From: Ascidiella aspersa | Taxonomy: Eukaryota | Direction: 5' to 3' | DNA: 64,000 nt | NCBI GenBank assembly: GCA_963924565.1 | Contig: OZ004608.1 | Location: forward strand, 5,332,001 to 5,396,000 | Shown here: positions 45,235-63,600 of the stretch, one piece after another | Numbering within the stretch: the first letter of the stretch is position 1 | How the letters are laid out: each line of letters opens with the position of its first letter | Notes under the pieces: model-generated | What the model saw: the letters and a program-made list of their open reading frames with translations, nothing else | What the model was told of the DNA's origin: nothing | The model's database searches: none | Position numbers and translations under genes: made by a program

Positions 45235-47558
45235 TCGTAATTATTAGATATTTTCCAGGGTAAAACTGTGACGTGTTGTATATGTTTAAACTGTTTCATG
45301 CAATATGCAAAGATAAACCTGTACACATTCAAAATAAACGCTATAAAGGCAACTAAAACGCAGACAAATATGCTTCTAAATAAGGTGGCGTGCATCAGTT
45401 ATCGATAGGAGGCCAAATTCGAATATGAAATGTAAAGCGGCTCACTTTGGTTCCAAAAGCAATAAATACAGTCAAAATACATTGCAACTGAACATTTTAT
45501 GTGCAGCACAAAATCATTGGTAAAGGGCGTCGTGTGTGTGGCCATACAGACAATATTTCTTATTAATACAGCAAACCAAATGGCAGAATGCATCGAGTAT
45601 TAAAACGGGGCAAATGTGTTCACAAGCAACCAAACGTAAACGATTTACACGCGCTAACGAAATATTCGTTTTGTAAGGAACTGGCAGCCATCTATACGCT
45701 ACCACAAACACATTACTTAATATTGAGAAACGGCTGGATATGACCGATACTTGGTATCGTATTCCGAAAACCGATATTTAGGGCAATAAGTATCGCTATT
45801 GGATCCAATACCAAACAGCTTTATTACTGGGAATAAACAAGCAAATTAGATGGAATCTGTGAAGGCAGTGTTTTACGTTGGTAGGCCACAAATATGTTTT
45901 GCGTTATTAGGAAGCCTTTTATCTTCGATTTTTAAAGGGCTATTTACTAATACAACAACAGTATCAGACAAGTACCAATGATACCATCTGGCATCGGGAA
46001 TCGGCCGTGATAAGACATCATCAGACATCCATAAAAACGACTATCAAATGTTAGTCATGTATCTTACGGTGACACGGTCACATAAGATACAACTTGTTTT
46101 ACAGGGAGGTGTCTCACGCCACATTTAACGCAATTGTACAACACTCTACCTTATTATTGCAAGACCCGACCGTAAAACTTGGCCGCCAACTGTTATTGTT
46201 TTTATTGAACGCCTATTTCAAACAATTTTAACGGCTGCAAGCAATTTTCTGTATACTTATAGTTAACATGGCAGACCAATGTATTCACATTTAACATCAA
46301 AGGCATTGGAAGGTTTACATTATCCGGTATGCGGACAGATTTTTACTCCCACGTTTTGCGTTTTAGTGTAAAGCAGCGCCCGAAACATATTATAAAATGA
46401 TTAGAGATTCATATTAAGCTACACAACGCAAAAGTAGAGAAAACGAAATGTTAGCGTGAGGAGACGAGAAGAAAATAAGGCACAAATATGGTGCAGCATT
46501 ATAAAGCTTTGTTTTTCAGTGTTGGTGCACTTACTACGATTTCGATTTTTGTAATACAGAAAGATACAGTTACACTGAAGATTACACTCAAAGCATTTCC
46601 TAACATAATTAAAGTAAGGTCAGGTGAAACGTATTTGTACAGAAACGATAGTGAAAGTCAAATAACATTACAGGAAAGATGTTTAACATCATTGATGTAA
46701 AATAAAAGTAAAAATTGCTTTTATTCTTTTTAAAGGCTTTTCATCTGTTGTAAGTAAGAAGTATTATTTATACATGGGTATATTATGCTTCAATGCTAAA
46801 TAATAAATCTAATTCAAAAATTGGTAGCCAAAAAAATTGATTCATTTATTGTTGTAAATAAAATATTGCCTTTTTATTTTTGTCATATATTTATTCGGTT
46901 TTCGTTGGTTTGAACGGACCGAAGCCAAGCTGTGTATATAAATATGAATGGTGCTGAGCTAAAAAACGTCAAAATATAGCAATACTTTTACTTTTAAGGC
47001 AGAAAAGGAAAGATGCCATTTGACATGACTGGTTTAACAAAGTCTTACATGATGGATGATGGTGGATTGTAACAAAGCTTGCCAGAGGAAAAGGCCTTTC
47101 AAAAGCCAACAAACGGCAATAAACATTTCATGGCAACACCACATTTTCGTTCGTTAAGTTTCAAAAGACACTTCATTAAACTAGACTTTTATTTGGGTTT
47201 TAAAACATGAAACACAAGAGCTTTACTATTTTTCGTGGGTCGGAGGGTACCGTCGCTTTATTTAGTGACAATTAACTTAGGCAGCACTGAACGCTTCAAC
47301 CCCGAATTTATTTTACGGTTCTTTCTTTTTCAGAATTTGAAAGTGTATAGTTAGTAATGTGTTGCTAAGAAATAAAATTTTTTGTTATTTTGTTCTCATC
47401 TTTAAAGTACAAATTCCGTTGTGCCAATTAAAATGTCATTTTGTGCTTTGCGCAACGCCTCTTCCTGAAATTTCCGCATAATTTTTTGAGGGGTCTGTAA
47501 GGTTGCAGGGCTCGCTACTAAACGGGAAATTAAGACAGTTTCCCATGGACCAGCGCCC

Positions 47559-50500
47559 TCAAACGGCCACAACGTTGCTCCAGTTCCGAACGACTTTTGT
47601 GTCGAACAAGTGTGACCACTTGTCTGCGCGTGGATCGTAAACTTCGACGGATTTCTCGTCGTACCTTAAGCACACATCAAAATGTGTTTAACGTTTATGT
47701 AAAAAATCGAAGATTTTGTTAAAAGTATATTTTAACCAGTTAAAATAGATCTTTAGTGAGTTCAGGTGGTGGAAAAGTATAAGTATTACTAAAATAAGTT
47801 ACCTCAGATTTGCAATTAGTTAAAATTCATGCCCCTCTTAATAAATGTGTTGTGTAACAATCCTGTGACCACAGGACAGTAGAATAGCTTTTATCTACTG
47901 TTTGTCTTAAAAAAAACGAAATAAATAAGATTTTAAACCAATTTGTCGGATCGGTTGTTTTCCGTTGGCTTTTACAAAAACAGCACCTGGAAAACAAGTA
48001 AATTTCGCAAAATATAAATCTCACCCTCCGACAACGTAAATTTTGTCATCCAAAACACAAGCTCCATGGTCGTAACGTCCAACGTTCATGGATTGAACCG
48101 GGGACCACTTGCTTGTTCTAGGATCGTAGCGTTCAACGCTGGATTCGTTCGGGGTTCCTTACGAAAAATGTCTTTTTAATTCGGAAGCGAACAATTACAA
48201 CAAGATACAAAGCAAAATAGAAAATTTAGCATGGTAATAAAAAATGGTGGGCTTTCAAGATAAATAAGTTGTCCTATTGCTACTAACAAATCGTCAAAAA
48301 AGACGTTTTTAAATGTTTACGGTTTTTTAAATTTTGTTGTAAGGCAATAGACCATCTTGCTAACATATGTTCCAAATCTTTTATTTTGAATAACAAGTTA
48401 ATATAGATAGTCGACTCGGCTAAACACAAGTTTTTGTTATTTCCATAACTTAATTGTTCAGATTAAAAATGTGCAATATTTCATATTGGTAAAGCAAATA
48501 TGTTTGGATTTTAATAAGTTACTGATATACGATTCAGAATAGGTTGCAACTAAAATGTGTAAAATTGTTATACTATAAGATACTTCAGGTGCATTTGTAG
48601 TACACCTACAGTTTGTTATTTTGAGTAAATCGCATCGTAGCGTTGTTTGTTTAACAGCCTACCTCCCAAAGCGTAAATGCAATCTTTAAGGGCGACAGCA
48701 GCCAGCGCTTGCCTCCCTTTGAGCATCGGGGCAGCTTCCGTCCACTGATCCTCCTCGTAAACCTCACAGGAAGTCATCTCCGACTTGCCATCCCAACCTC
48801 CGATGGAGTAGACTTTTCCTGGAGTCAGAAAAAGAAGCAGTTGTGGTATGCCAAGGAAAAGATAGCTTAAAATTAGTTCGAAGTAGCATATTTGTTTGAA
48901 ATGCTCACACGGTGCTAGGAATTTAGTAGTTTATTTTGAACTAGAAGCATTTATTTATTGCTTAAATATCAACATAAGGTTTTAAGAAGTGTCTAAAAGA
49001 ACACAATTTTTTTAATCGAGAATGAGAAATTGTAGACACAGGGATGCTCAATGCTTTGTAGTTTATTCCAAAAGGGACACCAAACATTTTAGCCAAAGGG
49101 CACGTCTGTCCGAATTGCTAGTAACTATAACTTTATTACTACGTTCTAATAACAAAAACTCACAAAATTGAAACATGCAAAGAGAATTATTTTCAGGATA
49201 TTATGCCATAACTTGCTTTGGCGCTAAAAGCTTAGTTTCTTTCGATAGTTAATTTACATTGTTGTGGGAAATGTAATGACGTCATTTGGTATTCTGTTTG
49301 GTCTAAATATCGCATTTCAGTTTTGGAATGAAATACAAAGAGTCGGACGTAGTATATTAACGGTAACTTTTTAACGTTTAGTAATTATAAGATAAATGTT
49401 CGTAAACTGGTCGACTCACCTCCTAACGACGCCATCGCGTGGCTCGATCTCGCCAGAATCATGTCGCTCGTCTTTGACCAGGAATCCTTCGTGACGTTAT
49501 AGAGGAAACACGTGGAAAGACGTCGGTTCTGTCGGTCAAATCCGCCGGAGAGGAAAATTAGTTCTGAAAGTCGAAGTTACAGTACAATTGCAGTGTAGTA
49601 GTTATTTTTTACAAGGATCTTGTAAACGCGTTTTTAAATATTTTTACTTGCCTGAATTGTTTTAATATTCGAATGGTGAATTTTGCGCGCAATTCTTCTT
49701 TAAATATTCGAAATTATTTTTCTTTAAATATTGATGCAGGAATAAATTGTGTCTTTAAATGCTTCTGCGGGATTGATTTCTTTAAATCTTTATGAAGAAA
49801 TACACTAAGTTTTACCCCATTAAGACAGGAATCGCATATACCTGTTGATTCCCACACACCAATATTTTTTTTTTCTTCCCATTCAGACGAGTCACACCCA
49901 ATACATTCAGCCCTCTATCGTAAAGTAAGTTTTAAACTCCCAGTGAAACAAACGTTAAACATCTGTTGTAGAAAATGGTTGCAGGTTGTAGTTAGACGTA
50001 GTAAAATACCAAAGCCCATGCAGAAATAGGTAGCATTTTGAATATTTCGTAATATCTCCTAAAAACGGACAAAGAGAGCCGAAAGTAAAAAAAAAAAAAT
50101 GCTACCTAATTCTGTTTGGGCTTTGATATTCTAACTATAGCTGTTGTACAGTTTTACAGTAACAGATTTTTATCTTTTTTTACAAGCAGTCATACTTTTT
50201 CTGCATTATCTCTAAGTTAATAAAAAAAATAAAAAAATAAAAATAATAAAAAAAAAATAAAAAAAATACAATTGAAAATAATAATTATAGTTATAGCGTG
50301 TCGGGCAATGCACACTTCGTGGCGTATACCCCATGGGTCGGCCACATCCTAAATTAAGAGCTTACTAACCTTCGCAAACGGCCGACGCGGCCGACATCCT
50401 TGCCCCCGGCATCTTGGCCACTGGGCTCCACTCGGTTCCGGCGGCCACGTCGATAATCTCCCCGCTTTTGAGGGGCGCCAGGTCCCCCTCTCCCCCGAAA

Positions 50501-53500
50501 ATGAGCACAAAATTACCGGTGGTCACTGACGTAGCCAGGATGCGGCCTTCGTTGAGATTCTGTTAAGAGGGCGAATTTTATTGTTATAAAAAGACGCGGA
50601 ATCAACTTTATATAACAGTAGACAAATATTACACAATGAGATACGGCCTTTATTGAATGTTATGATTTTATCCGTCTCAATTCACTTAAGCTAACCCTGT
50701 AAAAACACTAACTTGTTTATAGGTCACACTTTAACGAATAATATTGCAAATAGGTTAACGTTTGTAGAAATAACTTATCCACTTTGTATAAGGCGTCACC
50801 CAAATTATGCAACAGTAAAAAAAAAACTACGCCTGGATTTCTCTAATTTGAATTCTTTAAATTAGGTGGCATTGTTAAACGGCAAATTCTATTGAAATGC
50901 TGACTAGCCTTTGTAGAACCGTACTTTATCAGGTCGAAGTAAAAATGCAGTCTGCGTTCAAAAACATCCTCTTATATGCACGACTGTTTAGTTATGTAGC
51001 CCTTCTAAAATCGTGCCGACCAATTATAAAGGAGTAGTTTCCTTGGCAGTAAAAATATAACAAAAAATATACAACAAACAGACAATAGGTGATCACAGAA
51101 AAACATGTCATCCCCGTATTGCAATACATATAAAAACTATGTAGCTGTTCCCTTCTCGAAAAAAAATCCTGTAAACACCATACAAAACCGACGTTTTTTT
51201 TCCTGTCGAAAATTGAAAACAATAAATCACGAGTTACCGGCATTTCCGTAATCGCGCCAGTAGTGACGTCATACTTTGCGCAGTGACGTTCAGAACCGAG
51301 TCCTCCAATCTGAAAGAGGCTCGTCCAACCTGAAGTGTATAGTTAAATATGAATATGATTTTTTATTTATTATATAAAACCATTGTAAAGTAAAGAACGT
51401 TGTCTGTACTTTTTAAATCGGCTGAGTCTCATTGAAATACTGCAAAAAAACTTTCGCTTAATATTATCGGTTTCGAACAGGATAATAAGTTTTTTAAGTT
51501 TATTCTCCGTCTTACTATAACCTATAGAGTCTTTATATACATTATAAAGAACACTAAGAACAGTGGTTGCAGTGCAAAAAAGAAAAACGTAACTGTGATA
51601 AACAACAAAGTTCATAAACAGACTAAATTATAGTCCTTCTAATAATTTGGTGTATTTTTAGCACGTGCTATTTCCAGCTGTATTTCACATCGGATAGTTG
51701 AATTGTTCTGAGTGCTTTTTGTAGTTTTATCCACAAGGAGTTGGAAGAACGAAAAGGAAAATAACAAGAACTAACCTTCTGGGGAAGATGGAGTGATCGG
51801 TCTGACCATCTCCCACTCTGGTGATAAAACAACTTCATTGAAGGAAACAATTTTATCCAAAAAATCGTTGAAAGATTTTATCTAAACGACCGTATTACCA
51901 AGAGCCGAATAATCAGATCTTCGAACCTATAGGGCCAGCGAAACTTTTTTGAGGACCATTTTATTGAAAAGTACTTGTACGTGTACGGCTTAAATGCAAA
52001 TATATGCATAACCGCCCAATTGATGCTGAATAAAACTTCTTCCTTAAGTGTACTGTTTCTTTTATTATACGCCAAAAGTGCTTTTAGCTATTTACTACTA
52101 CAGCTTATATTATTTTTTTATCATTCAGCAAAGTTGAATAATAAATAATTTGGCATTAATATAGCGGCTCAAAAGCTTACACTTTTAAAGGGTTTAAAAT
52201 CTCGACTTATTAATCAATATATTATTTTGAAAAGCGAGCAATCGAGTTTGAATATCGGTCAAAGGAGTACGCGGGATAAAAAAGGTTGAGACTGGGTTAT
52301 CGGTGCCGGAATCAAATAAAAGTAGCGGACATCGTTAGACTTGACTGACCAGGTGCTGAAGGTGGGGAAGCTGGTGAAGGTGTCGTTTCTGGAGTTCCTG
52401 TTCTTCTGCTGGTGCCGAAGTTCAGTTTCTGCCAAGCTGTAAAACAAGCAGCAAGTAGCGAGTAGCAATTTCGGACGCCGGTCTACAATCCTACCACGTT
52501 TTTCTTAGATATAGAGTAAAGAAACCAGTCGTCAAAATTGAAATACAAACTGAGAGAATAGATATAACAGCACTTCGCCAACCCGAACCCAAAAGTAAAT
52601 TTAATATATGACCAATTCGGAACCGTTAAAACTTGTAGTCATCCTCTGCATGGCTATGACCCCAGTTTTTGAGGTTATGGCGCGATGTAGCGTTAATAGG
52701 TATTTGTTTTAGGACACCACTGCTCAAACAACATTTATTCTTTATATGTGAAACTATCTTATGCCAGGGTTTTATAAAAGTGTTAATCATTAACTTGTGA
52801 GGTGAATGGCTGCTAATGCCTTGAGCTTTAAAATTTTATGCAGTTGTTTTACAGCGAAACACTCACCTCGCGATAATATAGAGTGTCTCCTGTTTGATTC
52901 GTCGACCGGGGTAGCTGTTGACACAAGTCGTAACATTTGGTTACCAAGTCATGTAGTTTATTGTAAGGTATACACTCAACCGCTGTTAAAGACAATATAA
53001 ATGTAAACAACTTGGCTTACCGAAAAAAGTGAAATTTCATTTAACGTTTTTGGAAGCAAATTACTTGTGGAGCCAATAACATTGCTTAAACTCAACTAAG
53101 GGATAAATCTAGAAGATTCGTTATTATTAAATTCAATTAAAATAAGAAAATTAATTTAACAATTCAAGACACCTTGTTTTTTTCAAAATGGTTATGATTC
53201 AACAATAAGTTGACGAACGATTCATGCAAAATTATAATTGACTGAAATCGAGCCTATTTAGTCCTATATACGACCATAGAAAAAAAACACTTACGTGGGC
53301 TCGGTGACCTTGGCTTTGCAGTGTCTTCCTGTGGAGCTAAATAGAAACAAATATTTCCCCGTGTAAAAAATTTGAGGCAACACTGTAGATTTTCAATAAA
53401 AATATTGCAAACTTTCTATTTTCAGACATTTTGAAAATGACTTATGGTATCATTAGTTTAAAAATGAATTTACGATGAATCGATAAAAACACACACACGA

Positions 53501-56500
53501 AAAACAGAGAGTAACTAGATAGGAGTATATAGCTGTAGAGAACTAAAACGATAACGTCCCACTTTTTTTTTTAAATCTGAATTAATCAGATTGAAACAAA
53601 TTGATCAGAATTTTAAAATGTTTTATGTTGATTTCACAAAATTGCTTTACGAATCGAAATTTTCTGTTGATATGCCACCTTGTTGAAAGAAACTCTACAT
53701 GTGGAAAACATTTATTTAGATAGCAAACCATGACCTAAAAGGTAAAATAATTTCGGCACCGATACCCGCCTAGTTTCAGACGAGTACCGATACTACCACC
53801 TGGCATCGGGTTTCGGCTCTGATCCGATATTATCGCCTATCGGTCATCCCCAAACTTTTATTTTAGTTTTACCGATTTCTTCCGGTTCATCGGGAACGGG
53901 AGGAAGTGACGCAAACATGAAGCTTACGGAGAACATTGAGAGGTTGGTCCGTTGGCCTGAAGCTTTTTGTACTCGCCTCAACAACCTGGACAGTTCTCGC
54001 TTCTCAACCTCCAAATCAGTGCGCCGCCCGTTGCCCGAGTTCTCCAGCTTTTTTGCCACTGGAAGCAAAACATGTTTTCAAATTTACTTGGACTTGTGTT
54101 TCGGTTGATTTAAGGGCCGTTGAAAGTAAAAAGTTTGTTTTCCAAATGTGTAACGTTGAACAGTTCGCTTTGAGTGGAAAATAATGCGAAAATGACTTAT
54201 CGATTTTCACAGATTTTAAAATTTTTTGACATTGAATACGGAAAAGTGTTATTTTATGTTCGTTGAATTTGACGAAATTTTATTATTAAACAAGTTGAAT
54301 TGTACATGTGATACTCTAAAAATGAATTAAACCTTAAAATATTAATTTATTTTTAAATCGAATTTAATTAGTCGTAAGTGACTTAACTTGAAACTTCGAA
54401 AAATGACTTCGTGCGCACCGATTACAGTGTGTAACAGACAAAACTATTTTGTTTGCTTCTGGGTTTGAAACAATTTCTCCGATCGCCTTTCAACAAAAAG
54501 CCTAAAATTCACAACTTCGCTTTTATGGTTGAGGAATGAAGTATAGTTAAAGTAGGATTTCTTTGAAATTCAAGATGTTGACTATCGAACAAAAAATATC
54601 ATGACCAATGGTGGGTTATGAATAACACGCATAAGTTTAAAATTCACACGCTTTTCTTTTTGAAATTTCGCTTTTTTGATTGTGTAGTTAAGTACTTTAA
54701 TTATGTGTTCTCTTGGAAATTCCAGTAAAGTGTCACCTCTCGATCGGACATTTCTTCTGACCAATGTAGGATTTATAAACACTACGCATAAGTTTAAAAT
54801 TCACACACTTTTCTTTTTGAAATTTCGCTTTTATGGTTAAGAAGTAGTGTAAAGTAATTTACGAGATCCCTTCGGAATTCCTAAAGATGTTGAATCTCCA
54901 ACAGAAATTTCTGCGGAACAATGTTTAGGTTTATACACAACAAGCGAGTACACCGAAAGCCATCGCAGACTCACCAAATCTGTCGATCAATGATACAAGC
55001 AAGGCAGGCTAGAAAAAATATCTAGCCTGCAGTGAGGTTCGAACTCACGATCTTCGGTCATACCGGGATCGTCGGTCCACCACCTGAGCAACACAGACTC
55101 AGAGAGAAGCGAGTCGAGAAATAACTATACATCAATGCTTGCTACTTCTGTTAGTACAAGCAACTTCATATTTAAGTGGATCTGCAGTACCATATCATTC
55201 AATAAAAGATCCACGCAAATATGTGTTTAACAAATGTTATCCCTTCTGAAGCTGCTTTTTGACCAACGATTACGGCTTCCGTATAATTAGTACACCGAAA
55301 GCCATCGCAGACTAATCAAATATGTCGAGAAATTATAGTACAAGCAACTTCACAAAAAAAAGTTGTTGAACACATGTATGTGTTTTTCTTTCATTGAATG
55401 ATCATATGGTACAGGTGACCAATGCTGGGTTTATAAATAGCACGCATTTACAATTTATCACCTTTGAGGGTGGTCGGTCTGGCTTTCGGGTCCTTGTTCC
55501 AGCACTTCTTCATTAACTCGGTCAGTAGGGTGAAAATCTTTCGGTCAGCCTCGTTGGTCAGGGCCGCCTTGACCTGCTTGACCTTGGCGGAGTCCGGTCG
55601 GGTTCCGGCTAGGATGAGTGTGCGAAGCACGTCTTTTCGGACGGTGGCGCCTTCGTAAACACGACCTCGGGTCACAAGCTCGTACAGAACCATGGCAAGG
55701 CTTGGGAAGGAAAGTTTGGAGTTAAGTGGCTTAAACCGGGGTTATGTCGAGTCGGTTTGAAACAGGGCTGCACAGTCGGTTAAAAAACAACCCAAAAAAT
55801 CTGTCGTCGGTCAAAAGAATGAACCCAAGTTCGACTCCAGCTAAAAAATTCAACCCAAGTCAAACTCCGGTGAAAAAAAGAACCCAAATACGTCTCCGGT
55901 CAAAAAAGATGAACCCCAAACCGACTCCAGGCAAAATAATGAACCCGAGTCCGAGTCCCGAGTCCCTAGTTCGACACTGGTCAATGTGAGTCCCGTGTCC
56001 AATTCCAACTCTACAGCCTGTATTTAACCCGATTACGCAACTAAAGTAAGGTGGATATTCATTCGGCAATCACTCAAAGGTGTGCCATATATTTTGATGG
56101 TTGGCAAATATTCTGCCAATACCTATCCGTCTTTACGATTTACAGTTTTCGGTCTTATCAGTTTAAAAAATGTTATTGCACATGTGCACGTCGGACAGCA
56201 TATACACATTGCAGACAATCTTAGCCAATACTTGAACATTTAGACCTTCAAAGATCTTTTGTGTCCATAACCTACATTAACAATATATTATATTCAGTAA
56301 ATAATTCACTATAGGTATTGATATGGACATGTCTATACCTAACCGAGTGTTGCTCATCCAGCAGCATTATGTAATCACTCGACGTTTCGACGTCCTATAC
56401 AGAACGTCTTCATTAGGATACTGACATATCATGTAAAACAGATTCCTTATAATGATATGCCAGTATCCTGATGAAGACTTTCTGAATAGGACGTCGAAAC

Positions 56501-59500
56501 GTCGATTGATTATATATACTGCTGGATGAGCAACACTTGGTTATATATTATGCCTGGCAGCAATAGCTTATTTCATGTCTGTACATTTTACCCACCACAG
56601 TCTTCAACCAACCAACATACCTGTACATGTCAGCAAGTCGACTGATCTCTTTGCCTTCCAGTACCTCTGGTGCGGCGTAGCGGGCAGTGTGCTGACCAGT
56701 GGGCGCGATGTCCAGTGAGGTGGTGTCGCACTGGGACGCCCTGACGATGTTGACCGCCCCGAAGTCGGCCAACTTGACGTTCAAGTGTCGGTCGAGGAGG
56801 ATGTTTTCGGGCTTGATGTCGCCGTGGAAGAAGAACTTATTGTCCGAAAAGTTGTGAAGGTAGTAAAGAGCCGAGTTGACTTGACCGAACAGGTCCTGTC
56901 TAAAATTGTGCGATGTTTTGATTTATTCAATGAAACATGCACACAAATATGTGTGTTACTAACTGAGATCTAGCGCTTATGAAGCTGCTTTGTGACCAAC
57001 GATTACAGCTACTGCGTTTATTTACTGTTTGATTAATGCATCCAGAAGTAGATTTTTTAATCTGTTGCTTAAATAACAATAACAATATAAAGCAAAAAAA
57101 CACCTTTTCGACTGTAAAAAAGTAATTTCGTAAATGATATGAACAAACGGCCTGCCCAAGAACTTTGGTATCAGAGTTATAAAGTACCAACCAAGTCATT
57201 TGCAATAAATAAAATTCATTTTTTCAAGTTATTGTGTAACTCGAAATTTGGTCCGGGGCCAAAACTGATCCCCCGGTCGGATCAATTTTGGCGTTGGAAC
57301 AGCCGCTAAAACAGGTCCGGCTAGGCCAAAACTGGTCCGGCCTAATCCTAACCCTAGCCAGACCTGTTTTAGCGGCTATTCCAACGCCAACATCGATCCG
57401 ACCGGACCAGTTTTGGCGCTTGATTACGACCAAAATCGATCCGGCCGGACCGATTTTGGCCGGACCAATTTTGGCGTTACAATTGCCATAATAAGTCATT
57501 TTGATTCAAGTCCTTGGAAACAAAACTAAATGTTAAACTACTAAAATTAGCAAATTCACTCCAATCCTAGCAATTAATCGCATAGAAAACAGATAGATCA
57601 AGCGAAACAAAAGCAGAGTTGTACAATTAAAGTAAATTATGCATTATTTACCAATAATGTGTTCGATTAAAACAAAGACAAAGACAAGTCAACTAATTGC
57701 AAGACATTGACTTAAGCGCACTCATGCCAAGTCATAGTCATTACAACACTACAGGGTGGGCCAGAAGTAGGCTTACAGTTATTCCACAGCGTTGGCTTGG
57801 AAAAAGAGATAGCATTGAATGGCCGCCACGCTCAACTGATCTGACAACAATGGATTTCTATTTTGGGGGGTGTTGTAAAGAATAAAGTATATGAGAAGAA
57901 CCCCAAAACAATAAATTTACTTTTAGACCCAAAACCTACTTTTTATAACTGTAAGCCAGTGGTGTCCAACTCAAACATGCCGGCGTGCCACTTTTTATGC
58001 TATAACTTCTTCCCGTGCCAAAGTTTAGTAATATAATTCTTTCTAATAATAAAAGCGTTTTTTTACAAATAATAAAACTTAGCAGGCTGACTTTTGCTTT
58101 TTGTTTCTTCACACCAAACTTTATAGTTATGTGAATGCTAGCCTCCACTACAATATAATGTTATACTATTAGAAGTAATTGTTAGTTGTTGCCATTGCAG
58201 CGATTTACTGTATAAAAATTAGGCATTTTTTTACAGTTGGCTAAATAGCATTTAAGCAATTTAGGGACACTTGCGTGCCATTTTTTATTTGGTCGCGTGC
58301 CACATTTGGCACGCGTGCCGCTTGTTGGACACCCCTGCTGTAAGCCTACCTTTGGCCCACTCTGTATATCAGGTGCTAATTTCCTAACACGTGTCTTACC
58401 TGAGTTCCCAGCTCAATTCGTGCTGTGAGCTGATGAGTCCGTCCAGGCTTCCACACTCGACGTATTCCAGCACAATGGCCACTTTGTTGCCGTCCCAGTT
58501 GGAGAAGCCGTGGATTTTGACGATGTTCGGGTGCTCCATGCGAGCCAGTACCTCCGCCTCTCGTTTCACACTGCAAGGAGATGCGGTTTTGTGACGCAAA
58601 ATTTTCTGACGAGCCATTTCTTGGACTCAAAAGTATGGTTCACAAATTGAAGTGCCGTTTTTAATGCTTTAGGGTGCTCAGTTGTGTTTGAGTATCTTTA
58701 ATATGATTTTTGCTCGTTGTTAATCCCCTTGATACAGCTCTTTTTTGCACAGTTAAAGTGCAATAAACTAAATGATAATTTCCTAATATATGTAGAGAAT
58801 TGAATGTGTTGTTCCAGTCCCGTTTATAGTGACATTAACTGGGGACCAGTGGTTCTTAACCGAAGGGGGGCAACCAATTTTTAGGGGGTGCGAGCTGCAC
58901 TTTAATATCTAGCATTTTTAAATGATTTTATTGGTTACATATTGTGTTAAATCTGCTTTCATGTTGTCCTAAGCTTTACATCAAAATTACACATGTGTAG
59001 GCTATATACGTAACTGAAGAAAAAAAAAGCGAAATAATTTTCGACGTGCTATACAGAACGTCTTTATCAAGATACTGACGTTTCGGTGGATGCTGTAAGC
59101 CATACATACAATGTTGGTAACCACTGAACCATATCTAAATAGGTGTACCAGTAGAGGAATTTGTGCACATTAGTCAGGTACCTGACCTAACCCGCAATGT
59201 CACATTTTTTTTATAACATATACTTTTTATGATTATCTATAGTGGTATGGAGGGATGCTTTTAAGCAGCGGGAAAGAGCGAGGTTTGCAAGTAACTTGAA
59301 GAGCTTTGCAGGTAATTTAAAGCCCATGAAAGGCACTTTAGCACCTGTAAACTTCAAATATTGTCAACTCGGTCCAGTATTTCAACATAGATGTCATCTT
59401 ACCGAGTCTGAGTATTTTGGGCGGACTTGTTGAATAGCTACTGTGTGTCCGGTTAGCATTGCTCCTAAATTCAAAGAATCCTTGCGCCATAAGGTCTCAG

Positions 59501-60671
59501 GAAACACACGCTGTTAATATTTAACTATAAACTGGCTTCGCGAGGCCCAATAAAGAAAAGGTTCACAGTTTGAGATACTCGACTATACTTTGTGTTGGCA
59601 ACCTTTTCAAGAGTGAATTTGTGTTATTATACTAAAAGATAAAACGGTTATGTATAATAAAATTACAGTGCTTTAAACAGGGGTGGATCAGGCTGGGGTG
59701 CATGCCCCCCAAACTATAAATTTCGCCAACTATTGCCATGTAAATAGAACAGCTTGTTTCATTTCGATAATTGTGAACAAGTTCGCTCGAAAACAGCGGG
59801 TGTTTTACGATCAGTTTACATGACGTCACGTTATGACGTAATTTCATGACATCGTCTTTAAAAATTTTCATGGACCTCCCTCCCCCCAAAAAAATCCTGG
59901 ATCTGCCCACGGCTTTAAATCAATCTTCTTTGTAAATGGCCATATTTGTTTAATTCTAAATAGGGTAATCAGGTGGCACTATAAAAGACAAATTGTATTG
60001 TATTCTCAACAAACTTTTGCACAACCGTGCTTTATGAGATCAAAGTAGAAGACCTACTACTGACATTTTTCTAGAAAACCCACCACTTAAAATTTCTACT
60101 TTGACCTTATGAAGCACGGTTGTGCGAAAGCTAGTCGAGAATTCAATACAATTATAGTCGGTTTGATATTGCCACCTGATTACCCTATTTAGCCTTAAAT
60201 CAGACTTTCATCAAGAGAGTGGAAAATTGACTTACTCGTTAATGTGCTTTTCAATGTTTTCCTTCGTTCCTGTGATAGTGAAGCATTTCGCCACAACCTC
60301 GCCCTTTATCGGGTGGCGGCAAAACCGAACAGATGCGAAACCGCCACAGCCGAGGTAGTCAGTTTCGTCTGCACTCGTCAAAAGCTCAGTCGCACTTATG
60401 TCCTCGAGCTTGTTGGAGAACTTGATCTGTATAAAGAATAGGATTTTATTCGTACGATGAAATAAATGTTAAAGCAAAATCAAACTTTCCAATCCCACTG
60501 CTCAAATGGGTATAGTGACGTCATAGAGACATCGCGCGGCGTCGTGGCAGGCCCACAGCGTCCGCGATCGCTTCCTGTATTGCGCAACAAGTGGTGGGTA
60601 TTGCGCAAGATGCAGAGCCCGTAGGAAGCCAGGTTGGAATAAGGCTGCTGGCTTTCCGGAGTTGGCGACAT
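47559..60671 (-). CDS. RIP-kinase-like (TKL) non-RD Ser/Thr kinase fused to a C-terminal six-repeat Kelch beta-propeller, about 763 aa
   Basis: 16 phase-consistent exons: 60486-60671, 60236-60426, 58400-58570, 56621-56899, 55462-55700, 53873-54058, 53295-53336, 52867-52914, 52350-52436, 51776-51817, 51238-51329, 50370-50559, 49420-49563, 48663-48818, 48025-48157, 47559-47664 (TGA). Kinase motifs: LGCGGFASV, VAK, REAEVL, HPNIV, HGDIKPENILL, VKLADFG, YAAPE, DMYS, CW...RP. Kelch motifs: IGG..YD, FGG..W, SGG..YN..W, YSIGGWDG..W, ERYDPRTSKW, IYVVGG..VEVYDPRADKW. The first exon is the least certain. Confidence 0.9.
55021..55099 (-). mobile_element. tRNA-derived SINE head (Pol III A/B boxes) in a kinase-gene intron
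   Basis: The minus strand reads agtctgtgttgctcaggtggtgg...cgtgagttcgaacctcactgcaggcta, with an A box and a GTTCGAACC B box but a degenerate cloverleaf. It is flanked by duplicated tacaccgaaagccatcgcagact (about 54948 and 55291). Confidence 0.65.
55763..56020. repeat. MITE-like element with an internal ~30-bp minisatellite (aaaaatgaacccaagtccgactcc)
   Basis: About 6 degenerate units between cagggctgcacagt and actctacagcctg. This explains ORF 55744-55989. Confidence 0.6.
56340..56543. mobile_element. Long inverted repeat (~92-bp arms) made of two Penelope-type minimal hammerhead-ribozyme-like motifs
   Basis: Arms 56340-56432 and 56452-56543. Plus strand: CTGATGA (56468) - a - gac...gtc - GAAAC - GTC (56503). 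Minus strand: CTAATGA - a - gacgttct gtat aggacgtc - GAAAC - GTC. Confidence 0.65.
57235..57481. mobile_element. Palindromic MITE with ggacc/ggtcc subrepeats
   Basis: tgtaac...gttaca ends; repeated ccggacc.attttggc and aaaactggtccgg words. Confidence 0.65.
57752..58364 (+). mobile_element. Internally deleted Tc1/mariner-superfamily element
   Basis: TA-flanked TIRs cagggtgggccagaagtaggcttacag / ctgtaagcctacctttggcccactctg. Transposase remnant RWLGKRDSIEWPPRSTDLTTMDFYF matches the WPPRSPDL motif. Confidence 0.85.
57957..58337. mobile_element. hAT-type MITE nested in the right TIR of the mariner element
   Basis: TIRs cagtggtgtccaac / gttggacacccctg and a perfect 8-bp TSD ctgtaagc (57949-57956 and 58338-58345). 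Confidence 0.88.
59678..59912. mobile_element. MITE with CAGGGGYGGATC-type ends; related copy at about 61510-61905
   Basis: caggggtggatcagg...cctggatctgcccacg ends. The internal tgacgtcacgtt/gatgacatc segment recurs inverted at about 61550-61660 and 62760-62830. Confidence 0.55.
59959..60189. mobile_element. Palindromic MITE, same family as 41626-41799
   Basis: TIRs aatagggtaatcaggtggca / tgccacctgattaccctatt and inner gcacaaccgtgc / gcacggttgtgc. Confidence 0.75.
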
Positions 60672-63600
60672 AAAGAGCCTTGGGTTTGGGTTCGAACCAA
60701 ATATATTAGGTAACGTTGCGTGAGCGATTTAACTTATCGAAAGCGTTTTTAGTTAAAATAAAGTATTCAATTGTTTTCAGCATTGAAATCAAAGATTGTG
60801 TCTGAAGATTCTTTATAATCAGAGCTGAGCAAAGTTCTACTGAATTTCACTGTTGTAATGACTGATAAAGAGCCTTTATAATGACTGATGAAGTGCACAG
60901 TCATTTCAAAATGATTTGTTTATAACCCTGCTGAACTTATATGTGGAGGATTTTGCAAAACGTTGGCTTTTATGCAAATACATCGCCCGATATTAAAAAT
61001 CGAATGGTTCACATAATGTTTCGAACCATGGTATGAGCTTCGATATGAAAATCCTCTTACAATAGACAAGGAAGGATGGTATAAAAATATGTTTATATTA
61101 CTACAACGTGAGCCTACAAATTTCGAAACTAGAGTGTCTAGGCATACCGAAACCAGCATGTTTATGTTCAAGCCAGGAAAAGTCAACATCTTAATCGTGT
61201 CTTTGGGTCTTTTCGGTTTGAGGGCAATTTGTAGATTTATGTCAAACATTTAAGAAAATTTCCCAGTAAAAATCAGGGCCAAAAAATACAAACCTTGGCC
61301 GTATCCTCCATATTTGCTTACACTCTGCTTCTAACACCACTTCATATCGCTTAGGTTTCCACAGTTCAGGCGAAAATTATTAGGCAGTGCATTTCTTTGC
61401 ATTCCGTTTAGCAAGCGGGAAAACACCTAAAAAGATGTAAAAACTTATAATAAGTAGCTAAAAGTATACTTATCTTATAAAACAAGTTTATCACAGTAAT
61501 TAGAAAGCGCAGAAACAGGATTTTTGTTTGGGGAAGGCCTTAAAAAAATTCAAAGATGACATCACAAAGTTACGTCCGAACGTGACGTCACAAATTTGCA
61601 TCTAAATTAACTTAGAGATGACATCAAAACGTTGCGTCCGAACGTTACGTCACAAATTTCAGGTTGGATAGGTGTTAACTGCAATACAATAGCTGCATTA
61701 CAAAGATGTTATCCATTCGCGCAAAGCGAAAAAAACTCCTTTTAACGTTTAATTTGAATTTAAGCCGAAAACGATTTTAGCAAAATGGGATAAGACATAA
61801 AAGAAACCCAAGTGAGAAATTTGTGTTAACGTAAATAATTAGGCAAAAAGTACAGTTTGTGGTGGAACATAGCCATGTGCATATGCCCCTTGGACCCGCC
61901 CCTAGTAATAAGGCATGTTTAACGGCTGCACTTCGATTCCTAAAGTGTGTTTACGGCCAGTCCCTTTAAGTTGCGCAACTGTGCAAATGCGCTGCACCGC
62001 AACAGCACTTCAGCAGCAAAATAAACTTCTAGCGACTTGCCGAATCAGCTATTTATCAGGAAGGTAATAAACCTTAACAAAGTGTACAAACATTGACACA
62101 AAAGCAAGAAGCTATGTGAATTCATTCTGAATTTTGTTCACATTTTGGTCAAACTATATACCTACTCTCAATGTATTTAGTGTTTATTTACCTATTCTCC
62201 ATAGTTTTTAATTCACCTAGGACTCTGCCAACTCCTCCCTAAATCGCCTAAAATATCCATTTTTACTTAAAAATACTTATGCTCAATGCGAATCTTTCCT
62301 TGAGGAATCACTACTTAAAGGCAAACAGCAATGTCGACCGCTTTAACCGCTTGACTTTCAGTGAAAACCGCACTGCTGGTTCATATACAACATTAAACAG
62401 CCTTCGCCAAAGTGTGCTCGTAAAGCTACCTAGCCAAGGAGCGACGTTTAAGCACAGAGTCAACAAGAAGTTAATACAACATAGCACGAGAAACGATCAC
62501 AGCACAGCAATCCAGTGGTCTAGCCTTGTTTGAGGTCTGCTGATCATCACATGAAACCTTGTGTCAATTATATGTGGTCCTGGATTAATGTGCTATTAGT
62601 CAGCATAAATGTCTAAAATAAAACGCAAAATATCAGGGCTGTTTTTAACAGCGAAAGCGAAAAACCTGTAAAAGTAATAAGAGGACGTTTGTGACGTAAC
62701 AGTGCACGCCAATTGGGCGAGCGTAGTATAACTGTGATACTAGTTAACTTTTTTCAAACGTGACGTTACAAAGTTACGTCATAACTGATGGCGCAAAACT
62801 ACGTCAAAAATTGACGTCAAAAAGTCACATCTAAACGTGATGCCATAAAGATGAAGCCTTAAGAACACAACACAGTTCGTTTATTTTGTAAGTTTTAAAT
62901 TGGATAGGTGTTACTTTTAGTGCCAAAAGCTACATTATAAATATGTTATCGATTCGCGCAAAGCGAAAAAGGCTTTTATATCGTTTAATTTGCCAACACA
63001 TTCACACCACATAACGGATACAACTGAACGCTTAGCCATATTGTACTGAAAGCAAATAACAGTCATTAACAAAATATCTAAAAGATTTAGGGTTTCCGTA
63101 TCACATACCGTCTGTAGCAAGCAATAATCCTTTTAACTAAACAAGCCAAGTGTAGGCCTATCGTCATTAAGCTGCAAAAATGCGCCTTAAATAGGAAAAA
63201 ACATCGAAAGTCTAGTCTATCAAAGAATCTATCAAAATTGGGGTCGTCAAAGAATATCTCCAAAAATATGTCTATAGGTTCTACCGAAAGGAACCCTAAA
63301 CTTAGCTAACAGTAGCCTAACACAATCAATCTTAGTTAGTAGTCGTATTTCTAAATATTTGGTGGCACAGTTGAACGACAAACTCTACTGCAGTGTCATG
63401 TTCCTACTATATTACATTCTAATTTAGACCTTATTAAGCGCGATTGTGCTGTTGTAATACTAACTCTCGTTAACCATTGCCACCTAATTGCAACAACCTA
63501 TAAAGCAATATAATCTAAACTCTGAAACAGCCTACTTCCCTTTAGTTTCGTTGCATGTTACAGTGTACGGTTTACCTAGCCCAAGCCACTACACAAAGTG

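Follow-up and report, generated by a model that had tools for sequence, protein, structure and literature searches.

Can a kinase from the neighbourhood of IRAK and RIPK be wired to a Kelch propeller in a single animal gene, and what would the propeller do there? The question is raised by a minus-strand gene of the ascidian Ascidiella aspersa, located in a window of 64,000 nucleotides (contig OZ004608.1, here C2:5332001-5396000, of a 308.6 Mb genome). In animals, to our knowledge, a Kelch propeller of this kind nearly always forms the part of a CUL3 ubiquitin ligase that selects the substrate. The known partners of TKL kinases in the IRAK/RIPK neighbourhood are death-fold, RHIM and ankyrin modules. 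In this chordate invertebrate, such a propeller is attached to a kinase instead, within a family that duplicates in tandem and is most variable at the sites by which KLHL proteins hold substrates. The kinase-Kelch architecture and its expression are close to certain. We are inclined to think that the propeller is a variable recognition module, which would bring partners to a tethered, constitutively competent kinase.

One expressed gene for kinase and propeller

The gene runs from four kinase exons (60426-55462) through a helical exon and four Pro/Ser linker exons into six Kelch exons, and the stop codon occupies 47559-47561 at the end of the last Kelch exon, K6 (Table 1). From the E2 acceptor (60426, phase 0) to the stop at 47559, the exons total 2121 nt, or 707 codons. 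Canonical AG/GT sites and compatible phases across E2-K6 yield a single open frame. In the exon translations we read LGCGGFASV, VVAKC, REAEVL, HGDIKPEN, DFG and AAPE, so that every motif named in a preliminary description of this DNA (GCGGFA, VAK, αC Glu, HGDIKPEN, DFG, APE) is found.

All searches with the window gene used its single exons. The Pfam scan proposed in that description was accordingly run exon by exon. It placed Pkinase on three exons (58399-58626, E 2e-8; 56551-56922, E 3.9e-19; 55451-55741, E 5e-4) and Kelch on five stretches (50368-50562, 49388-49576, 48619-48930, 48024-48158 with Kelch_1 at E 4e-14, and 47562-47687). Six GG doublets, each with a Y...W blade motif, correspond to six blades. 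No Pfam domain came up in the helical exon X6 or the Pro/Ser linker, nor in K1 by itself or in the three upstream open reading frames (ORFs) searched. The earlier statement that BTB, BACK, death domain, CARD, ankyrin and RHIM are missing holds as well, as none of them was found by Pfam in the exons, the linker and the upstream ORFs.

Transcripts were checked over 50300-56000 with one raw-read RNA run (X4) and three contig runs (X1, X2 and X3). X3 was recorded without its kind; its contigs skip introns at GT..AG boundaries, and it is therefore RNA-derived, while X1 and X2 behave as DNA. The joint 55462>54058 (GT..AG, minus strand) is present in an X3 contig and one X4 read, and 53873>53336 in an X3 contig and two X4 reads. 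X3 contigs also carry the joints 53295>52914 and 52867>52436, and another of them joins K1 to K2 (51238>50559) and extends 435 nt into downstream exons. The spliced X3 contigs are of similar depth (36-75), and the one holding E5 extends 1035 nt upstream, which is 394 nt beyond E4, E3 and E2 together. In exon-bearing bins, X4 reads have their first mate on the plus strand only, as expected for a stranded library reading minus-strand RNA. This chain leaves no room for extra exons between E5 and L9.

We considered whether the two halves are adjacent genes, joined in frame by chance or by a read-through artefact. Several observations weigh against a single transcript. The spliced joints displayed cover E5-L9 and K1>K2, and the joints 52350>51832 and 51776>51329, which would lead from L9 through L10 into K1, are not among them; X3 also has unspliced contigs across 51302-52379; X4 covers the gene sparsely, with 97 reads drawn from about 6% of that run and none on K2. 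However, splicing is seen from E5 into L9 and from K1 into K2, all phases are compatible, and no in-frame start or stop signal occurs between the kinase and Kelch halves. Ten paralogs keep the two halves collinear, and the relatives include single-ORF versions. Two separate genes are thus very improbable. As the preliminary description had proposed from the letters, an intact kinase and a six-bladed Kelch propeller belong to one gene, which is expressed and encodes a soluble protein of about 710-760 residues.

The linker is not uniform. In the DNA contigs of X1 and X2, 46 other letters stand in place of 51643-52113, at about half of the local depth, and one haplotype is therefore without the predicted exon L10. 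The reading frame survives this loss because L10 is of phase 1-1.

At the other end, the 763-residue model of the preliminary description implies a candidate first exon of about 57 codons from the ATG at 60671. Its phase-0 donors, at 60531 and 60486, are both weak, and when the 2.5 kb preceding E2 were compared by tblastx with the upstream stretches of ten paralogs, no conservation appeared. The Ciona and Clavelina relatives described below start just a few residues ahead of the point equivalent to E2.

Table 1. Exons of the kinase-Kelch gene in window coordinates, with the basis for each assignment.
Exon	Content	Position	Strand	Basis
First (candidate)	candidate first coding exon, ATG at 60671	60486..60671	-	ORF from ATG
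E2	Gly-rich loop LGCGGFASV and VVAK lysine	60236..60426	-	motifs; phase-0 acceptor after CAG kept in paralogs
E3	αC Glu (REAEVL) and hinge	58400..58570	-	Pfam Pkinase E 2e-8; splice phases; paralogs
E4	HGDIKPEN (non-RD), DFG, activation segment, APE	56621..56899	-	Pfam Pkinase E 3.9e-19
E5	C-lobe, CWNKDPKARP	55462..55700	-	Pfam; X3 contig covers 55462-55702; donor 55462 spliced to 54058
X6	charged helical extension after kinase	53873..54058	-	RNA-spliced on both sides; paralog conservation
X7	linker, 42 nt, phase 1-1	53295..53336	-	joints 53873>53336 and 53295>52914; AG/GT
X8	linker, 48 nt, phase 1-1	52867..52914	-	joints 53295>52914 and 52867>52436 (X3 contig); AG/GT
L9	linker, Pro/Ser/Thr-rich, several S/T-P sites	52350..52436	-	acceptor 52436 seen spliced; donor GTCAGT predicted
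L10	predicted linker exon, 57 nt, phase 1-1	51776..51832	-	AG/GT sites; phase; X4 reads in bin
K1	Kelch blade 1	51238..51329	-	X3 contig joins 51238-51331 to 50370-50559; paralogs
K2	Kelch	50370..50559	-	Pfam Kelch_6 E 2.7e-5; spliced to K1
K3	Kelch	49420..49563	-	Pfam Kelch_3 E 2.5e-9; phases
K4	Kelch	48663..48818	-	Pfam Kelch_1 E 1.5e-10; phases
K5	Kelch	48025..48157	-	Pfam Kelch_1 E 4e-14; KLHL-type PDB matches
K6	Kelch and stop	47559..47664	-	motifs; phases; paralog identity

Kinase class, propeller type and relatives

With HGDIKPEN, the kinase has a Ser/Thr-type catalytic loop that is non-RD, in agreement with the first assignment. HGD is kept in every paralog read, and HGDLK is invariant in seven kinase-Kelch relatives. 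The Gly-rich loop, β3 Lys, αC Glu, catalytic Asp and Asn, DFG and APE are all present, and by these motifs the kinase looks active and is predicted to be catalytically competent. RIPK1, RIPK2 and IRAK1 also have a non-RD catalytic loop. Like RIPK1-4 and IRAK/Pelle, the window gene places a TKL-like Ser/Thr kinase before a C-terminal protein-interaction module. Unlike RIPK1-5, which carry a death domain, CARD, RHIM or ankyrin repeats, it has only Kelch at its C-terminus.

Whether the kinase is RIP-like, as first described, depends on the sequence used for comparison. Among solved structures, E4 alone ranks SNF1/AMPK (2e-11) above RIPK3 (2e-8), and E5 alone finds no match. A profile of the own-genome E3+E4 paralogs scores JAK-like, lectin receptor kinase, SNF1, RIPK2, RIPK1 and PDK1 all at 63-82 bits. 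Phallusia P0077, annotated 'RIPK1-like', is the closest full-length named relative, and it matches lectin receptor kinase, BRI1, RIPK2, TAK1, IRAK4 and RIPK1 within 65-70 bits. Scores from the own-genome clade thus fail to separate RIPK from IRAK4, TAK1, BRI1 and lectin receptor kinases. On the other hand, Clavelina P0047 reaches 105 bits with RIPK3, followed by RIPK2, RIPK4 and RIPK1, and the next non-RIPK structure stands at 77 bits. Automatic annotation names two ascidian kinases near the window kinase exon 'RIPK1-like' and 'RIPK2-like'. A word-indexed protein search with the Clavelina kinase region returned family members and plant receptor kinases only, with no RIPK or IRAK references. 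The kinase looks TKL-like, from the IRAK/RIPK/receptor-kinase neighbourhood. We do not assign it to the RIPK family, because the structure rankings disagree and P0077 scores flat across TKL. Of the RIP-like label, the TKL-like and non-RD character is retained, together with the preference of P0047 for RIPK3, RIPK2 and RIPK4; the profile of its own clade and the equal scores of P0077 for RIPK, IRAK4, TAK1 and plant kinases do not support the rest.

In a kinase tree of the E3+E4 region (153 columns, window E3 and E4 as separate rows), both window exons fall in a starred clade of own-genome kinases and P0077, which shares with them a 99/99 clade. The Ciona/Clavelina Kelch-bearers and those from ENA/JGI metagenome contigs fall in two other groups. 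Kelch-bearers are therefore distributed over three subclades, mixed with kinases that bear other or no C-terminal modules, on a weak backbone.

For the propeller, the best natural PDB matches of K5 are KLHL20, KLHL17, KLHL12 and KEAP1, and the propeller of the Clavelina relative matches KLHL12, KLHL2 and KEAP1. The propeller is accordingly predicted to be KLHL-type and six-bladed. It shares its sequence type with the CUL3 adaptors KEAP1, KLHL3, KLHL12 and KLHL20; in contrast to these BTB/BACK proteins, the window propeller is tethered to a kinase and not to a ubiquitin-ligase scaffold.

The same architecture exists elsewhere. When 1.84 billion representative proteins were scanned with E4, no match exceeded about 55% identity, and four of the top 150 matches carry both Pkinase and Kelch. 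One of them is the Ciona intestinalis 'uncharacterized protein' XP_078489399.1. Word-indexed searches added one kinase-Kelch protein of Clavelina lepadiformis and six more from ENA/JGI metagenome contigs. The ESM Atlas contains four Pkinase+Kelch clusters with 50-91 members each, and in three of these most labels are Porifera; the labels are automatic and serve as leads only. The gene had been called lineage-specific, and this description is not supported as it stands, since the architecture is present in Ciona intestinalis, Clavelina lepadiformis, metagenome ORFs and the mostly-sponge atlas clusters.

The two ascidian proteins (XP_078489399.1, 647 aa; Clavelina, 656 aa) resemble the window gene in having an N-terminal HGD Pkinase, a linker and a C-terminal KLHL-type propeller, with no transmembrane stretch. 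They differ from it by kinase exons only about 40% identical, a place in another subclade of the partial kinase tree and a shorter linker, and all are annotated 'uncharacterized'. Clavelina also has this kinase in a greatly expanded set of proteins, in which the partner is TPR, Sushi, CUB or nothing that could be recognised. The ENA/JGI proteins and the ESM Atlas clusters share the domain order and the invariant HGDLK loop. The ENA/JGI proteins are unlike the window gene in being intronless, in having a transmembrane-like stretch and in forming a separate starred clade. Two ENA members, checked on contigs of 0.6-0.9 Mb, are intronless single ORFs, and P0123 is intronless with 721 aa in 2166 nt.

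Eight ENA/JGI kinase-Kelch proteins (P0157, P0115, P0123, P0127, P0213 and P0215-P0217) have a hydrophobic stretch before the propeller, and the Clavelina kinase-Sushi P0131 and kinase-CUB P0155 have one between the kinase and the C-terminal module. With 19-residue Kyte-Doolittle means of 1.7-3.1, these stretches suggest receptor kinases with an N-terminal kinase and a C-terminal ectodomain. By analogy, the window protein might be a receptor that spans the membrane, its kinase in the cytoplasm and its propeller outside the cell. The sequence between its two domains speaks otherwise. X6 is charged, helical and conserved, also in paralogs, and its 19-residue mean does not exceed 0.94; the linker exons defined by transcripts are hydrophilic. 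No hydrophobic stretch occurs in X6 or the linker, and we therefore read the protein as soluble. The Ciona and Clavelina kinase-Kelch proteins likewise have no such stretch. A transmembrane reading was rejected on comparing the best window stretch (0.94) with the membrane-spanning kinase-Kelch subgroup (1.7-2.6), and we give the receptor arrangement hardly any weight for this gene.

More distant combinations have been reported. Entamoeba histolytica has kinases with Kelch repeats (PMC2939887), and choanoflagellates have Eph-like receptors with kinase and Kelch (PMC6993872). These proteins differ from the window gene in kinase class, domain order and topology, with no sign of shared descent. 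A survey of RIPK proteins lists LRR, DEATH, SH3, ZU5 and Zalpha as partners in amphioxus, with no Kelch, and did not sample tunicates (PMC9573974). In the literature, we found no description of an animal kinase-Kelch family, only the Entamoeba and choanoflagellate cases and Kelch phosphatases. The architecture is already present, unnamed, in public protein sets, so that the window gene is not its first instance. Its novelty is as a described entity, namely a TKL kinase whose KLHL-type propeller takes the place of the death-fold, RHIM or ankyrin modules found in RIPK and IRAK.

Loop variation and the possible role of the propeller

The kinase exon E4 has 86 matches in the own genome, around thirty of them at 55-64% identity. 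A search with K5 found copies at 56-78% identity, each on the strand of its kinase and 4-15 kb further downstream. Including the window gene, there are 15 such kinase-K5 pairs, mostly in a cluster at C2 2.40-2.83 Mb, with others at C2 1.71, C2 7.05, C7 13.9 and C8 20.2 Mb. Of the paralogous loci among these pairs we fetched ten, and in every one E2-E5, X6 and K1-K6 follow each other in order on a single strand; the linker exons, short and of low complexity, escape detection in this comparison because of their size. Identity across the paralogs is 56-63% in E2, 39-50% in X6 (in all ten), 55-64% in K1 and 66-84% in K6. The window gene is a diverged member of a tandemly duplicating family, for which the kinase-Kelch fusion is characteristic.

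In KEAP1, strand B ends with the GG doublet, and substrates are held in a pocket made of the BC and DA loops (PMC4668279, PMC3597819). We assigned loops by motif, counting as loop the eight residues that follow a GG doublet and those surrounding a conserved Arg, in eight paralogs of the C2 2.4-2.8 Mb cluster and not in the diverged window gene. Columns with at least three residue states amount to 38 of 75 in the predicted BC/DA loops and 7 of 172 elsewhere (Fisher 5e-17). Since BC and DA loops make up the KEAP1/KLHL pocket, it is the predicted binding loops that vary. The pooled ratio of nonsynonymous to synonymous differences (pN/pS, Nei-Gojobori), counted from non-independent pairs and not by a codon-model test, is 1.34 in loops versus 0.48 in the core, and the loop value exceeds 1 in 26 of 28 pairs. 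The kinase half gives 0.26-0.90, and among recent paralogs the corresponding ratio of substitution rates (dN/dS) of the Kelch half is 0.76-1.58. At greater depth, both halves stand at about 0.14-0.18.

Such loop-focused variation fits a propeller that may act as a variable recognition module. The preliminary description had proposed a sensor or substrate adaptor; its recognition aspect agrees with the variation among paralogs, and a sensor or adaptor function itself is inferred. Apart from the pairwise counting and the choice of cluster paralogs, several points weigh against recognition. Synonymous divergence (dS) is also higher in the loops, 0.19 versus 0.08, which may come from misalignment or gene conversion. 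Loops are the least constrained part of any propeller and would vary in all of them. Furthermore, the identical paralogs pB and pE (C2 2.63 and 2.78 Mb) have an in-frame stop in K2, and some family members may be pseudogenes or decaying.

This last point leads to the idea that relaxed constraint lets recent duplicates drift to pseudogenes, the window gene or much of the family among them, so that a dN/dS near 1 in the Kelch half reflects decay. The Kelch-half ratios of recent paralogs would agree with it, as would the K2 stop in pB/pE and a near-identical tandem copy without detectable Kelch exons past an assembly gap. Decay, however, would spread variation evenly, and the variation observed is confined to loops, while the β-strand core is under purifying selection and the deeper comparisons are low in both halves. 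The window frame, moreover, is open over its 707 codons, spliced and expressed. We regard decay as improbable.

For the recognition module, we picture the following course, whose mechanistic part we give about an even chance. The top face of the propeller, formed by the BC loops after the GG doublets and the DA loops around the conserved Arg, would bind a short motif of a partner. Binding would bring the partner to the tethered kinase, or cluster kinase molecules on a multivalent target. The kinase could then phosphorylate the partner or its own linker, which is rich in S/T-P sites. Among closer paralogs the predicted binding loops change fastest, and different copies would probably recognise different partners.

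Alternatively, the propeller might regulate its own protein, either by docking on the kinase or the phosphorylated linker and holding the kinase off, or by driving oligomerisation. Non-RD kinases are commonly controlled otherwise than by activation-loop phosphorylation, which we count in favour of such regulation, and a long flexible linker with many S/T-P sites lies between the two domains. X6 of the window copy ends (53873-53900) in a proline-flanked acidic stretch, PPVPDEPEE. It recalls the acidic, PXXP-containing degron that KLHL3 binds (PMC9022995). This stretch is not conserved in paralogs, and linker exons differ in presence among copies and haplotypes. Fast change of the top-face loops would also be unexpected for a surface that binds a conserved part of the same protein. 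Intramolecular regulation is accordingly an unlikely account of the propeller, and we keep to recognition of outside partners.

The likeliest setting for such recognition is innate immunity or another form of self/non-self recognition. A caution here is that the whole case for an immune role consists of the kinase being non-RD, the copies expanding in tandem and the loops varying. A more far-reaching proposal, which we put forward as speculative and rather doubtful, is that the ascidian cytosolic kinase-Kelch proteins, with loops under diversifying selection, are germline recognition receptors in immunity or allorecognition, and that the sponge membrane-spanning kinase-Kelch proteins are their kin by descent. 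If the propellers bind distinct partners, the family would constitute a compact recognition-to-phosphorylation device. If true, it would add to the lineage-expanded receptor families of animals without adaptive immunity. The family offers itself for initial functional work in a tractable model.

Other copies and repeats

A tandem copy lies at C2:5413000-5432000, about 36 kb past the gene, with E2-E5, X6 and X7 at 98-100% amino-acid identity. This copy has lost X8 and L10, and L9 did not turn up in it either. Its homology reaches as far as an assembly gap of 200 N (C2:5419415-5419614), and a search below the gap gave no Kelch exons; the copy is either a truncated duplicate or an assembly artefact. 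A segment of the E4-E5 intron (window 56340-56543) matches itself in reverse within the tandem copy.

Very high-copy repeats are located in and around the E5-X6 intron (window 54884-55456 and 53738-53928). In the DNA runs, their contig depth sums to 1e4-1e5, and loose ends and internal joints are numerous. Rfam at the gathering threshold and a tRNA scan found nothing over window 47000-61500.

Kinase paralogs in a cluster at C3 34.4-35.1 Mb, at C4 2.81 Mb and at C8 4.92 Mb have no K5-like exon nearby. When C-terminal modules were sought in three of these Kelch-less paralogs (C3, C4 and C8), the ORFs gave no Pfam match.

The paralogs pC and pF (C2 2.65 and 2.43 Mb) have identical kinase and X6 exons, and their Kelch parts differ by 8%, at synonymous and non-synonymous positions. 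This mosaic suggests gene conversion or recombination between copies. Some forty Kelch exons, about 45-55% identical to K5, are densely packed at C5 31.2-32.5 Mb with no match to this kinase nearby, and this array is a separate expanded Kelch family.

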